Source of the DNA: Camelus ferus
Lineage: Eukaryota
Direction of reading: 5' to 3'
Length of the DNA stretch: 64,000 nt
Assembly (NCBI RefSeq): GCF_009834535.1
Contig: NC_045704.1
Coordinates: 16,864,001 to 16,928,000 of the forward strand
This document shows, piece after piece, positions 15,487 to 59,000 of the stretch. Position 1 is the first letter of the stretch, and every line of letters begins with the position of its first letter. Position numbers and translations under genes: made by a program. Below the pieces are notes generated by a model. That model was given only the letters and a program-made list of their open reading frames with translations. It was not told the DNA's origin and did not search any database.

Positions 15487-17167
15487 TCAGTCCCTGAAGG
15501 CAAGCAGGAGCCCTAAGAGGATGCCCCAAGCAGGACTCCGACTAGAGGGCTCCGCACCAGCAGGCTGGACCCTTTCTAAGATGTTGATGACCTCAGTCAC
15601 TCTGATGCTCCCAATATGGTGAAGATCTGCTAAAGCTCTGGTATGTTCACGAGTACAGCCCATGAGGAGGAAGGTGGTATTGAGGGAACCTGTAAGGAAG
15701 AGGAGGAGGAGTGAGGGACACTTTCAAGATTCAAATGCCCTCCTCTTCCCAGACACCCCTCACAAACTAGGACACCCACGCTCCCAGCAAAGACTTGGGC
15801 ACCAGTCACCTTCCCCCCTCCTCCATGGAATGATGTGCTGCAACCCCAATGCCCTGTCCAAATTCCACCTGCCTCCCTCAAGGCTGGGAAGGCACCAGAC
15901 TGCACCTAGCACAGAGTAGGCTTTTCAGAAAGAACATTTCTTTCCTCTCACCTGCCTGAAATTTTAAGGTGGAACTGTAACACTTGGTGGCGTCCCTGGG
16001 GCAAGGCTCAGTGTTGACAAAATTTGGGAGGCAACTCTTAGAGTGCTCGCCCACACAAGTTGGGCAGCCATGGGAAGAAAATGCTAAAGTCTTGGGGGTA
16101 TTGGCCTCAAGTTTCACAAAAGAATCCATGTTGGTGAGGTTATTGCAGAGATACTTCCGGCAGATGCGGCTGTAGGAGGCAATGGACAATCCGGGCGGTG
16201 AAACAAGATAGGAGACTTGCGCAGGGGTAAGATGAGGCTGGGCTGCAGCCTTTAAAACCCACAACTCCCTTTCTGGTCCCTGAGAAGCAGAAGATGAGAG
16301 AGCTCTGATCAGTGTCGCTGACCACACCTGGTCCAACCTCCCAACCTCCCCCTCCACCCTGCTCCTCCTGCTCACTCTGCTCTGTCACCAACTTTGCCTC
16401 CCCTCCCCCAGTGTCCATCCCCTGCAGAGACACAGGGCCCAGATCCCCAGGTCTCCAGCTGTCTCTCCTCACTCCTCACCCCACAGGAGCCCCTCTGCTC
16501 CTCTCTCCCTTGTGTCCCAGACTTTTCTTCTCTCCCAGAGTTCCCCCCTTCTCCTGGGTTCTGCCCTCTTATCCAGCCCCCATCACAACCAGCTGGGTTG
16601 GTATCTTGATGTTGTCCCCAAAGATATAACAGGGTAAATAACTGGAACTCAAGTCCAGGGCCCCTGGGTGCTGGCAATGAAGGTGGGGGTCAAAAGAGCA
16701 AGCGAAACAAAAAAATGAGCACAGTCACTCCCCTTCACCTGTCTCGATGAACACCAACGTCTCCTCACAGCCCTCGCTCAGCCTACACACCGCACTCCTC
16801 ATCAGAAGCCACCTCCAGTTATGGAGACTAACAGCTCTGAAGAGTGAGGCTGTTGCTTCATAGCACAGAAGAGCTCGAGCCCCTAAAGAGAGAATGTTAT
16901 TCCAGTCATCTGCCCCTCACATTGCCTTCTCAGCCCCTGAACTGCCCATCAAGAGCTCAGCCTCCACAGATCCCGCCCCCGAGGAACCTAGATATCCAGC
17001 TTTCCTTCCCGCCAGTGACATGAATCCAGCACCCCGCCCTCCACCCCCACCCCCATCCCCACCAACAGGGTCCTTAAGCATCCAGCCCCTCAGGACATAC
17101 GAGGCAGAGTAGAGATGGCCCCTAGGAGACAGAGCAGCTGCACAGGGCTCAGATGCTGGGGTCCCAT
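15487..17167 (-). CDS. LYPD4: LY6/PLAUR domain-containing protein 4 (sperm GPI-type LU-domain protein); +1 frameshift in coding exon 3 in this sequence
   Basis: Coding exons (minus) 17167-17101 (MGPQHLSPVQLLCLLGAISTLP), 16882-16739 (RARALLCYEATASLFRAVSLHNW...), 16279-15952 (328 nt) and 15689-15487 (...AWGILLGLLLAFRD*). Total 742 nt, which is 1 more than a multiple of 3. Minus-strand AATAAA at 15434-15439. Confidence 0.93.
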
Positions 17168-17499: not shown

Positions 17500-19150
17500 C
17501 AGAGACAATGAGACCAGAACAACAAATGTGTGTGTGGAAGTTAACTGACATATTACTAAATAACTCTTGATTTGAAAAAAAAATTTTAAAGTATTTAGAA
17601 CTGAATAATAGCAAACATACTACATTTCACACACACACACACACAAGTGTATGTAAAATCTGGTGAAAACTGAATAAGAGCTGTAATTTAGTTAAGTTTA
17701 GTTACAATGTCAATTTCCTGCTTATTACAGCTATACAGAATGGCCCCATGCGGGACCAGAGGAAGGATTTAAGGGACTCTGTGAACAATTTTTGCAACTT
17801 CTTGTGAGCCAATAATAATTTCAAAATCAAAAGTTTTTTTTAAACTACATGTCAAAATTTGAGAAACAACTAGATCAGTATTTAGATGTAAGTCTAATTT
17901 AAACACATTTATCAGAAGCATTAAAATGTTTATGAGTTAACTCAAGAAGTTATATAAGGAGCAACAAAGCATCCCCCCCAAAAAGGGGGGGGTATAAATA
18001 AAAATAATGGCAGAAATCGATGAAATAGAAAAACAACAAAAAATTACAAAAAGCTAACATTCATTCTTTGACAAGATTATTGAGATAATTCTCCAGCAAA
18101 TCTAATCAAGAGGGAAAAAAGTGAAGATGCAAATAAAATACAAAGTGAAAAATAGGAATTAACAGACATCATATGTTCTAAAAGTAATAAAAGTATCATT
18201 AACAACTCTACATTTATAAATTTGTAAATCCAGATGAAGTGGATAAATTTCTAAAATATATGAAATGCCAAAGTTGGCATAAGAAGAGCATATGCAATGT
18301 CTTAAACCAATGAAAATGGCCAAGGATCTCAGGCAAATTGACAAGAAAAAAGGGATCAAGCCCAGTAGGGAAATGGGCCAAGCGTGTGAAGAGGGACTTC
18401 TCAGAAGAGCAAACCAGAAAGGCTAACAAGCATGTGAAGAGACACTGGCGCTCAACAATAATCAGAGAAATGCAATATATCCCAACGTACAGCCCTCAGA
18501 CTGGTGAGGACTCAGAAAGCTGGAAGAATACAAGCACTGGTAGGACTGCGGGGCTAGAGACCCCCGTGCACTGCTGCTCATGGGAGTAGTTGGGGCGGGG
18601 GATAGGGTCCTCTCCTGCCCCTGAAGAATGGGGGAGTTGAGAGTTCGGATCAATGTCACAGGCCCAAAGTATCATTCATCGTATGGAGGAGTCTGGCAAT
18701 ACTTAGTCAAATTAGGTTTACAAATAGCCATTTCTGATCATCCGAGGTACACAGAGCAGCAATTTCCACCTTCAACTACAAAGGAACACATATGAGGATG
18801 CAACATTGTTGTGGTGACAGTGAGCTGAAGGCAACGGGAGACCTAGTAAACACCCAGCACGCAGGGGTTGTACACCAGCGAACAGCATGCAGCGCTTAGA
18901 AACAACTGGTTAGATGTAGGCATCACGTGCACATGCATGGACATCAAGGCACAGTGCTGATTATTTTAAATAGTAAATAACACTATCACTTGCATAAATT
19001 AAAACCTCATGGACATAAAACACTGCACATCTCGCAAGAACACACACAAACCAAAGATATGCATCACCCACCTGAAATGAGTACCTATGGGACAGTTAGG
19101 GAATAAAAATTGGGAATTGAGGATTACTGGAAAGAAATAAAACATTGTAG
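17500..19150 (+). mobile_element. Several old LINE-1 fragments (ORF2 and 3'-end, L1M/L1ME-like) in the LYPD4 5'UTR intron; boundaries approximate
   Basis: A-rich L1-like motifs (GAAATCGATGAAATAGAAAA, AAATGGGCCAAG...GAAGAGGGACTTCTCAGAAGAG...AATAATCAGAGAAATGCAA). (CA)n at about 17627-17645. Confidence 0.65.
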
Positions 19151-45389: not shown

Positions 45390-47050
45390 AGAGTAGGTTG
45401 CTGCGCAGACTGAGGCGGACGCAGGGCCCCCAGCCTCGCCAGGGAGGTGTCGGCCCACGTCAGGCCGACGTGAGAAACCTGAAGCCCGCGCCCCGCCGGC
45501 GGACAGACGGACAAAGCCGGGAGAGGTCGGGCGGGGGCGGGGCGGGGCGGATGCCCGCGGGTCCCGGGCGGAGCGGGGAAAGGAGGGGCCACGANNNNNN
45601 NNNNNNNNNNNNNNNNNNNNNNNNNNNNNNNNNNNNNNNNNNNNNNNNNNNNNNNNNNNNNNNNNNNNNNNNNNNNNNNNNNNNNNNNNNNNNNNNNNNN
45701 NNNNNNNNNNNNNNNNNNNNNNNNNNNNNNNNNNNNNNNNNNNNNNNNNNNNNNNNNNNNNNNNNNNNNNNNNNNNNNNNNNNNNNNNNNNNNNNNNNCA
45801 TCAGGTACACCGTCCCCGGCCCCGCCCGGCCTCCCTCCCCTGGGCTGGAACGGGAAGTGGCGAGGAGGAGGGAGGGGGCTGGGTGCTGCCCGCAGTGGAG
45901 GGGCCTCCTCCCGGCCCCGCTGAGCCAGCAGCCGCCCATCCCTGGGCCTCAGTTTTCCCATCTGTCAAAGGGGACAAAGAGAGGAGAACTAATATTTGCC
46001 GAGTGCCCAGTAGGTGAGATGAGGGCTGTGAACTGGGGGTCAAGGCCTCCCAACTATCCGGCGGAGGACGGATGATCACTCCCACTGTACGGGTGGGGAA
46101 ATTGAGGCCCAGGGAGTAAAACCAACTCGTCCCAGGGCACACATATCGTGAGACCTAGAGGAGGTGGGATTTGAACTCGCAGGTGCTTTCCGCTAAGCGC
46201 CATCCTCTAACTTTGCATGCTTTAGAGCCACCCAAAAAGAAAAACGACAATAACAGCGCCATAGGCCGTTGTGAAGCTGAAAGTTGCAGAGCGCATTTGA
46301 AAGCGTTTTTTGGAAAAGTCCTTTTCTAGGCCATGAATTATATTCTGGGGGGTGGGTTGTGGGGAACAGAACAGGAGATCTTTCCCCATTGTACAGATGG
46401 GAAGACTGAGGTCCGGGGGGACGTAATTACTTTTTCCAGGTTCCACTGCATGTCAGATGGTAAGGTGTTCTCAAACCGAGGATTTTTGTTTTGCAGCCCC
46501 AGCGGAAAGTGTGCGGGGGTGGGGGTCAGTGCGAGGAGAATTAATGTACGAGCGTTGGGAATTCAAATGGTCCCAAATTAGGGTGGCTAGATTAGGGCAG
46601 GGAGCCCAGTCTAGGGGCTAAGGGCCGGGGCGACTCGTAGATCTCAAATTGAACCTGGGTCAGGGAGCTGGGACCATCCCTATCTCCTGCCTGGGGGCGG
46701 GGACTAGGGGGCGGGACCCAGGAGAGTGATGGGGGCAGTCGAGATACGGAAACGCCAGCCCTCCAAGGCAGGCCAGAGCGGCCCTATCTGGCCAGCGTGG
46801 CTCAGTGGAGAGCTAGAGCGGCCAGCAGGAGGAGTAGAGTTTCCTGGGCAAGAACTTGGCAGGAGCTGGGCTAGAGCGGCTAGAGGGAGCAGTGGAGCTG
46901 GACGCAAAGGTGGCCTGTGGGGCGGCTAGAGCGACTCGGAGGCGGGGGTGGGGGTGCCCAGAGCCGGCGCGCGGAGGCTTCGGTTCAACCGGCTGCGGTG
47001 CTTCTCCGACCTGGAGCAGGTGAGGGACGCGGCCCCCGGCGGGCGTCAGG
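45390..47050 (+). promoter_or_regulatory. ARHGEF1: ARHGEF1 CpG island with two alternative non-coding first exons (one ending at 45804, one at 47019)
   Basis: GGGCGG array at 45529-45550; donor CATCAG|GTACAC right after the N gap; second CpG block at 46700-47050 with donor GAGCAG|GTGAGG. Confidence 0.7.
45595..45798. other. Assembly gap (204 N)
   Basis: Run of N inside a GC-rich promoter. Confidence 1.
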
Positions 47051-56000: not shown

Positions 56001-59000
56001 AGCAGATGTGGAGGCACGAAGGGCAGAGCATCCAGTCTCCACCCAGAGTATGCAGTTGATACCTAGTTTTGAGGCATCTTCACCCACCGCGCCCCAGCCT
56101 ACCATAGCTGTGTTCTCAGAGGTCATTCCATCCATCCATCCCCTACTGAGGTACAGAGCAGCCACTTGGTGTCCGCCAGGCACTGGCTGGCTTTAGCCCC
56201 CAACCCAGATTCTGCAGCAGAGGAACTAAGGTCCCCATGGTGTGGAGCTCACTGTGGCAGGAGTCTTCCAACCAGCCTTGCTCTCCCTGCCCCCTTGCTG
56301 CCCCTACAGGTGTAGATGCCCTCCCGGAGCTGGGGGACCCGCCCCCGCAGGGCCCGGCCAGCCTGGAGACCCTGGCACCCCCTGAGAGCACCGAGGAGGG
56401 TGCTGACACAGAGAGGTGCCCAGGGTTGGGTGCAGGGGAGGGGCTGGGTGGAGGATCAGGCTTATCTGGGTGCGGGGAGGGTGCGTGGGGGTCGTTGCGC
56501 TGCCATTTGCACCTGCCTATCCCCGAGCCATCTCCTCTCTGCCCTGCTCCTCTCTCTTTCCGTCTTTCTCCTTTTTCTTCTACTTTTGTCTTTTCTCATC
56601 TCCCCTTTCCTTCTTTCTTCCTCCCTTTTTCCTTCGCTTCCTCTTCTCCTTCCTTTTTCACTGATTTTTTTTTCTCTTCTCCGCTTCCTCCCTCTTTCTC
56701 CTTTCCTCCCCCTTCCTCTCCCTTTGATGCTCCTCTCCCCTCACCCCCCACCCCCTCTCCACCCCTCCATCTCCTCCTGGCCCCCTTCCCTCTGCTTCTG
56801 CACTTTTCCATCCCTTCCCCCTTCTCTTCTAAGCCTCCAGCCCAGCCGCCTCGCTCCTGCCACCTGGTGCCCCTTCCCTCGACCCCCAACCCCTTTGTGC
56901 TCCATGCCCCGGGGGCCCTGTCCCCCTCACAGTTGGGGGGCAGGCTCTGCCCCCTGCCTGTCTTTGTGCTGCTGCTTTGGGGACCTTTGGTGGGTGGGGG
57001 AGGTGAGTTGGGTTCCATCTGGGTCAACCTCTGACCCTATGCCCCTCTCTCCCCAGAAGGTGGAAGAGGTGGGTGCCTGGGCCCTGGGTGGGGGGAGGGC
57101 TAGCCCCTCCCCCATTTCTCCCAGCCCCTCCCCTCTCCCCATGGGCCACCCCCTCCCCTTCACCCCTGTGAGGGGTGGGTGGGGACATCACCCTCCCAGT
57201 CGAAGAGCTAAGTATTGAAATCCCCCTTCCCTCCCTCACCTCCTGGCTCTGCCCCATCCTCCTGCCTCAGGGAAGGGAGGGGTCAGTCTTGTGCTCCATA
57301 CTGGGTTCCCTTCCCCTCCCCCACCAATTTCAGTATCCCTCCTTACCACCCCCCACTGCCCCAACGCCCGACGTCCCACTGCTCCTTCTGACTCTCTCCT
57401 CTCTTCTGTTGCATGTTTGATCTCTGTCCTGGTCTCTCCCTGTCTGTCTCTGTCCTGGTCTCTCCCCATCTCTGTCCTGGTCTCTCCCCATCTGTCCCAG
57501 TCCTGGTCTCTCCCCTCCGTCTCTGTCCCTGTCCTTGGTCCTTCCCTGTCTGTCCCTGTCCTGGCCTCTCCCCATCTGTCTCTGTCCTGGTCTCTCCCCA
57601 TCTCTGTCCCTGTCTTGGTCTCTCCTTGTCTCTGTCCTGGCCTCTGCCTGACTCTGTCCTTGGCCTCGGGGTCCAGGCTGTCGGGGCGTCTGNNNNNNNN
57701 NNNNNNNNNNNNNNNNNNNNNNNNNNNNNNNNNNNNNNNNNNNNNNNNNNNNNNNNNNNNNNNNNNNNNNNNNNNNNNNNNNNNNNNNNNNNNNNNNNNN
57801 NNNNNNNNNNNNNNNNNNNNNNNNNNNNNNNNNNNNNNNNNNNNNNNNNNNNNNNNTCCCCCCCCATCCACTGTGAGACAGCGTGGAGAGTCAGGGAGGC
57901 TGGGGTGGGGGTTGTTGCCAGAATTACAGAGAACTGGGTATCGGATGCTGAGGTCATTGAGGGCCTACAGTGGTCACAGGAGAGGGGTAAGAGGTTTCTT
58001 TCCAGAGATTTGGGGGCTGGTCTGCAGCGTGGGCCACCCTGGGGGATGGGGTTGGACACGAAGCAGTCAAAGGCTCCTCCCTGGGACCCCCTGAGCCAGG
58101 ACCCTAAAAAGACCTCTGTCCCACAGCCCTGAGCCTGGAGATGAGGGGGAGCCGGGACGGTCGGGACTCGAGCTGGAGCCAGAAGAACCCCCTGGCTGGC
58201 GGGAGCTCGTCCCCCCAGGCACTCTGCACAGCCTGCCCAAGAGCCAGGTGAAGCGGCAAGAGGTCATCAGCGGTGAGTGCCACCCCTTCCAACCCACTGC
58301 GGCCGAGGACACAGCGCACATGCAGGGAGATGTCCACCTCAGTGTTGTTTACAACAGGCTGAGCTTGAAGGCAGCCTGTCTCTTACCACAGAGGACTATT
58401 TGTTAAGTAAATTCTAGAAGCCTCCACGGAACAGGGACGCAGCAATTGAAATGACGTTTCCAAAGAATTCTTCGTGGCCCAGGCCAGAGCTGGTGTTAAG
58501 AGCCAGAAACGGGCTATGAAACTGTATTTCTAGCATTAAGCCTTTGTTTCCTTATTTGTGAAACATGGACAGTGCTAGTTCTACTTCAAAAGACTCCCGA
58601 AGTGGGGGAGGGTATTGCTCAGTGGTGGAGCACATGCTTAGCATGCACGAGGTCCTGGGTTTGATCCCCAGTACCTGCATTAAATAAATAAATAAATAAA
58701 TAAATAAACAAACAAACAAACAAACAAACAAACAAACTTAATTATTATCTCCCCCCCCAAAAAAAGCAAAACAAAAAAATTTGTTTTAAATAAATGTCAC
58801 TTCTTAAAAAAAAAGACTCCTGAAGCAGAAGATAAGACGGTTGGTGAGCACTGTCATAGTGGTGGACACAGGGTGAGAGCATTTGAATGTGACCCCTATT
58901 ATTACTACGATCTTGAGCGCTCAGGGGAGAAAAAGATTCCCACAGGGAAAAGTTTGAAAAAATAATCAATATGTTAGTGGTGCTTCGCTTCGGGGCAGAG

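Follow-up and report, generated by a model that had tools for sequence, protein, structure and literature searches.

The stretch of DNA analysed here, hereafter the window, comprises 64,000 nt of Camelus ferus and corresponds to CM020776.1:16,864,001-16,928,000 of GCA_009834535.1, whose LYPD4 locus the window contains without a single difference, both over 7.7 kb and over 21.7 kb. This accession is the Camelus ferus assembly BCGSAC_Cfer_1.0 (PMC8069558; PMC7924851). Runs of N occupy 45595-45798 (204 bases) and 57693-57856 (164 bases) of the window. The gene LYPD4 lies on the minus strand in four coding exons, and inspection of the splice sites showed that every intron has GT...AG ends. Coding exon 1 (17167-17101, minus strand, 67 nt) starts with the ATG at 17167, encodes the signal peptide MGPQHLSPVQLLCLLGAISTLPR and is followed by a GT donor at 17100-17099. 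Exon 2 (16882-16739, minus strand, 144 nt) has both its AG acceptor and its GT donor. Exon 3 (16279-15952, minus strand) lies between an AG acceptor at 16281-16280 and a GT donor at 15951-15950, and is 328 nt long here, against 327 nt in all other camelid sequences compared. Exon 4 (15689-15487, minus strand, 203 nt including the stop codon) follows an AG acceptor at 15691-15690 and encodes the remaining part of the LU domain together with a hydrophobic C-terminal tail (AWGILLGLLLAFRD). The translations of exons 1, 2 and 4 equalled the annotated Camelus protein (P0044), and the three exons were 100% identical to a spliced RNA contig (L005). No second lesion of LYPD4 was found at any splice site or in the other exons of the window, in agreement with a preliminary description of this DNA that had called them intact.

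The gene is the orthologue of LYPD4 (Ly6/PLAUR domain-containing protein 4). The annotated Camelus protein has 246 aa (XP_010945058.1, XP_031312891.1, XP_032341795.1), and the window matched it at every residue before and after a frame break in exon 3, with 100% identity in an 89-aa piece (A) and a 157-aa piece (B). Comparison of the 90-aa second half with protein-cluster representatives retrieved LU-domain proteins, and a follow-up search with a relative as the query returned more than 100 mammalian LYPD4 proteins with E-values down to 1e-114. The UPAR_LY6 domain (PF00021) was recognised at residues 141-215 of the annotated protein with 61.5 bits (cut-off 24.8), and the exon-3 piece of the window gave a UPAR_LY6 match of 26.3 bits in the frame one base over. 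Approximately 5 kb from LYPD4, in all three Camelus assemblies, lies a gene encoding DM and DMRT-like domains (372 aa), as expected for DMRTC2 in the LYPD4-DMRTC2 neighbourhood; human LYPD4 likewise adjoins DMRTC2. The identity of both halves, the domain and the neighbouring gene bear out the name LYPD4 that had been proposed from the sequence alone. The protein is probably GPI-anchored.

The cluster represented by the annotated protein contains LYPD4 of Camelus dromedarius and C. bactrianus, whose names are free of the label 'LOW QUALITY PROTEIN', and one Camelus entry that carries it. RefSeq gives this label automatically to a model corrected against its genome, and a real frameshift would receive it too. 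The label seems to belong to the C. ferus accession, which would mean that the RefSeq pipeline had already met the frameshift. An alpaca isoform X2 (P0146, 198 aa) is annotated in which the 144-nt exon 2 is skipped in frame, and short LYPD4 'isoform X2' models (about 211-218 aa) exist in several other mammals too.

Exon 3 of the window is read in two frames. The frame entering the exon encodes GTRKGVVGFKGCSPASSYP and, after the break that follows ...SSYP, continues as CASLLSCFTARIVHCLLQPHLPEVSLQ up to a premature TAA at 16142-16140 (minus strand, codon 117), and the frame one base over encodes AQVSYLVSPPGLSIASYSRICRKYLCNNL...KFQA, also written AQVSYLVSPPGLSIASYSRICRKYLCNNLTNMDSFVKLEANTPKTLAFSSHGCPTCVGEHSKSCLPNFVNTEPCPRDATKCYSSTLKFQA. 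The break lies at 16223..16227 on the minus strand, where the coding strand has CCCC plus T before GCG, at codon 89 (Pro) and at a CpG. The plus strand shows a G4 run at 16224-16227, equal to C4 on the coding strand, on which the insertion-bearing site is spelled CCCCTGCG; window position 16223 corresponds to approximately 16,880,223 of CM020776.1. The coding sequence before the break has 267 nt (89 codons) and is followed by 27 shifted codons, giving 116 aa, and the premature stop is 188 nt from the last exon junction (16140-15952). These exon, stop, product and distance values had all been given in the preliminary description, and all were reproduced. A 116-aa product would be devoid of the Pfam-recognised LU domain and of the hydrophobic C-terminal tail, and an mRNA with this premature stop would be a likely target of NMD. 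Rescue through an alternative splice site or start codon was considered and rejected: conserved coding sequence flanks the break on both sides (SSYP before it, AQVSY after it), so no splice choice restores both halves.

The DNA encoding the annotated protein was compared among three Camelus loci and one alpaca locus. Besides the window's own assembly, these came from C. bactrianus (GCA_048773025.1; locus L007), dromedary (GCA_036321535.1) and alpaca (GCA_048564905.1). The first of these is a domestic Bactrian camel sequenced by PacBio HiFi and Hi-C (PMC12905343), and the dromedary assembly is mCamDro1.pat of the Vertebrate Genomes Project (PMC13603154). In all three other assemblies exon 3 was 327 nt long (TACCCCGCGCAA) and read ...TCTTACCCC-GCGCAAGTC... 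at the site in question (TACCCC-GCG; TAC CCC GCG CAA, Y P A Q), as compared with ...TCTTACCCCTGCGCAAGTC... in the window. The four-way alignment showed that the extra T (window 16223; A on the plus strand) was private to the window's assembly. The coding sequence of each of the three others was 741 nt long and translated exactly to the annotated protein. Among the Camelus haplotypes, LYPD4 showed three synonymous and no non-synonymous differences, which are small numbers, and alpaca LYPD4 showed three amino acid differences and three or four synonymous changes. Nothing in these sequences suggests relaxed constraint on LYPD4, although the numbers are too small for a formal test. The gene span of 1681 nt in C. 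bactrianus, the same as in the window, was considered as a sign of a shared insertion and rejected; it results from an extra T in the T-run of intron 1 of the HiFi assembly (L007 position 10453).

Further evidence came from the RNA contig, a 932-nt Logan contig of run SRR33129666 that is the source of cluster member P0148. It represents a spliced LYPD4 mRNA with a 5' UTR, a 741-nt ORF, a 3' UTR and an AATAAA signal. Aligned to the window, it fell into four blocks with the introns removed and was 100% identical in exons 1, 2 and 4 and in the 3' UTR. Its exon 3 has 327 nt and an intact frame (TACCCTGCGCAA), with the site reading ...TCTTACCCTGCGCAAGTC... (TACCCT-GCG; TAC CCT GCG CAA), exactly the codons that the preliminary description had expected. 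At 17111 (minus strand), a synonymous C>T change in codon 19 (TCT) is shared by the window and the contig, and the other three assemblies have C. The match at this position assigns the contig to the haplotype of the window. The T at 17111 marks a haplotype that also carries T at codon 89. At least one Bactrian-type animal thus transcribes LYPD4 and splices it correctly, and the contig shows that an intact form of the window's haplotype exists, not that the reference animal has it. A search of the literature for the species and tissue of SRR33129666 did not find them; its alleles are Bactrian-type. LYPD4 is testis-specific in mouse and human, and the run therefore probably derives from the testis of a Bactrian-type camel.

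The three assemblies and the contig agree on the length of exon 3 and differ in the base at the break itself. Codon 89 (CCC followed by G, thus a CpG) ends in C in the three assemblies and in T in the contig, a synonymous difference, and a C/T change at a CpG is the commonest kind of point change. Bactrian-type camels are polymorphic for C and T at this synonymous site, and it is the T haplotype (CCT) that was assembled. The window string TACCCCTGCG can be obtained from the C allele by adding a T, or from the T allele by adding a C. Relative to the three other assemblies, the extra base is accordingly the T beside the run (16223); relative to the contig, whose haplotype is the closest one, it is one base of the run. 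The preliminary description had placed the extra base in the G4 run, which holds against the contig and does not hold against the three assemblies. The two descriptions, both alleles written in a row or C3 counted as C4, are equally good.

The position of the extra base, exactly where C and T alleles both occur, suggests merged alleles and not a random read error. In the simplest account, the codon-89 C/T site would probably be heterozygous in the reference animal, and a consensus or polishing step would have put down both alleles, C and then T. Alternatively, the C3 run before the T on the T haplotype may have been counted as C4. Either error would add one base, turning a 327-nt exon into one of 328 nt with a false +1 frameshift, and the true gene would be an intact, expressed LYPD4 of four coding exons encoding 246 aa with an LU domain. 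If the base is an artefact, we would lean towards merged alleles as its origin, and a miscount of the run would be a realistic, less probable origin.

To place this base in its context, 21.7 kb (window 5487-27167) was aligned to two HiFi Camelus assemblies, with the dromedary used to polarise the changes. Over this distance 18 substitutions and 12 indel events were derived in the window lineage; the HiFi Bactrian lineage had 11 substitutions and two indels, each of which lay in a homopolymer of at least 7 bases. The 12 events included two alignment-edge effects and several in homopolymers or microsatellites. Four were private 1-nt insertions outside repeats (16223, 13461, 11699 and 6870), a class with no member in the HiFi Bactrian lineage; all four of these non-repeat events were insertions, and no private 1-nt deletion was found among them. 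On the minus strand, each of the four reads 'CT' where the other sequences have C only or T only, and all four are compatible with both alleles of C/T sites put in a row. The excess of private insertions, four against none in 21.7 kb, is suggestive; it is not statistically strong and is not proof. An alleles-in-a-row error may have generated +1 frameshifts systematically in this genome, and the local pattern of private insertions suggests that the assembly contains many false ones. Private length differences in homopolymers or microsatellites were seen at 17992, 24085, 11374, 17897 and 17646 (they include C8 vs C7, T6 vs T7, GC beside a G-run, TA and a TG repeat); these could be real polymorphism or error.

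On this evidence, it is very likely that the extra base arose as an error of BCGSAC_Cfer_1.0 and that the gene of the animal is not mutated here. None of the other assemblies compared shares the insertion, and an RNA contig of the same haplotype contradicts it, which is the pattern of a false indel. Because the other camelid sequences are intact, the frameshift almost certainly reflects an assembly error and not a loss of the gene, and the reference animal itself presumably lacks the insertion. The preliminary description had favoured a homopolymer error or recent allele over a true loss, a preference that the intact sequences support; a 327-nt exon elsewhere, which it had named as the observation that would count against the frameshift, was what the three other assemblies and the contig contained. 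The frameshift is thus correct as an observation and ordinary in its meaning.

A different explanation, which we regard as improbable, is that the sequenced wild camel carries a real and recent loss-of-function allele, probably in the heterozygous state, in which a C was duplicated within C3 on the T haplotype. The deposited sequence does contain the insertion, 1-nt duplications in short runs are ordinary mutations, and the remainder of the gene is intact, as it would be for a young allele. Moreover, the wild camel population is small, so that deleterious alleles can drift, and heterozygous carriers would be fertile, as Lypd4+/- mice are (PMC6744855). However, the insertion is missing from three other assemblies and from the contig of the same haplotype, and further private 1-nt insertions outside repeats lie close by in the same assembly. 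By our own estimate, an artefactual indel in a 741-nt coding sequence of this assembly is tens of times likelier than a real private frameshift in a given gene. The shifted product was also sought in a collection of 5.8 billion proteins. The shifted-frame ORF had no match there, and no protein carried the frameshift tail when the ORF ending in it was the query; the sole match to this second query was the intact ORF of another species. The collection contains no camel genomic ORF of exon 3, intact or broken, and the negative result therefore carries little weight.

Still further from what the data favour, and in our view highly improbable, is an inactivation of LYPD4 throughout Camelus ferus as a fixed or common loss, with sperm transport proceeding without LYPD4. 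The frameshift, seen in the single C. ferus assembly compared, is the only observation in its favour. Against it, the lesion is single, with no decay elsewhere in the gene, and all Camelus sequences encode an identical protein and differ only synonymously. The C. bactrianus HiFi assembly, which differs by only 11 substitutions in 7.7 kb, has an intact LYPD4, and the contig that shares the marker allele at 17111 is spliced and has an intact frame. The lesion of a unitary pseudogene would be shared within the lineage, and neither the other three assemblies (C. bactrianus, dromedary, alpaca) nor the contig has it; there was also no loss of the normal transcript in SRR33129666, in which spliced exons 1-4 with the full ORF and the 3' UTR were present. 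In addition, male mice without Lypd4 are almost sterile, with a pregnancy rate of 3.7% for Lypd4-/- males against 93.3% for heterozygotes (PMC6744855; Fujihara et al. 2019). A true loss of LYPD4 in camels, which the preliminary description had raised as a possibility, is therefore unsupported, the gene being intact in every other camelid sequence compared.

A fixed loss of LYPD4 in a mammal would be remarkable, and the evidence here speaks against it. A screen that trusted this assembly would score camels as being without a gene on which male fertility depends in mice. The local pattern of insertions means that other apparent losses in this genome need checking against HiFi camel assemblies first. 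If the insertion were instead a real allele, a fertility-relevant loss-of-function variant, carried by the reference animal, would be segregating among wild Bactrian camels, which are critically endangered; by analogy with the mouse, subfertility would be expected in homozygous males, and this would matter for the management of a very small population.

An assembly error, the explanation that we prefer, has a close parallel in the uncorrected long-read indels that truncate proteins, which have been discussed for the camel assemblies CamDro2/3 (PMC7468183). The C. ferus assembly of Ming et al. has contigs much longer than those of Illumina-based assemblies (PMC7468183). The window resembles the CamDro2/3 cases in showing a private 1-nt insertion in an otherwise perfect gene of a long-contig assembly, and differs from them in that its extra base sits at a site where C and T alleles are found elsewhere. 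The second known system is the mouse knockout. LYPD4 is testis-specific and located on the outer acrosomal membrane, and Lypd4-/- sperm do not pass the uterotubal junction and bind poorly to the zona, by an ADAM3-independent route (PMC6744855), which confirms the knockout infertility cited in the preliminary description. By analogy, camel LYPD4 may likewise be needed for the passage of sperm through the uterotubal junction, and since the knocked-out gene is the orthologue, a real camel null would be expected to look alike. In contrast to the knockout, however, there is no evidence of any camel without the protein, and the camel gene looks intact, transcribed and spliced.
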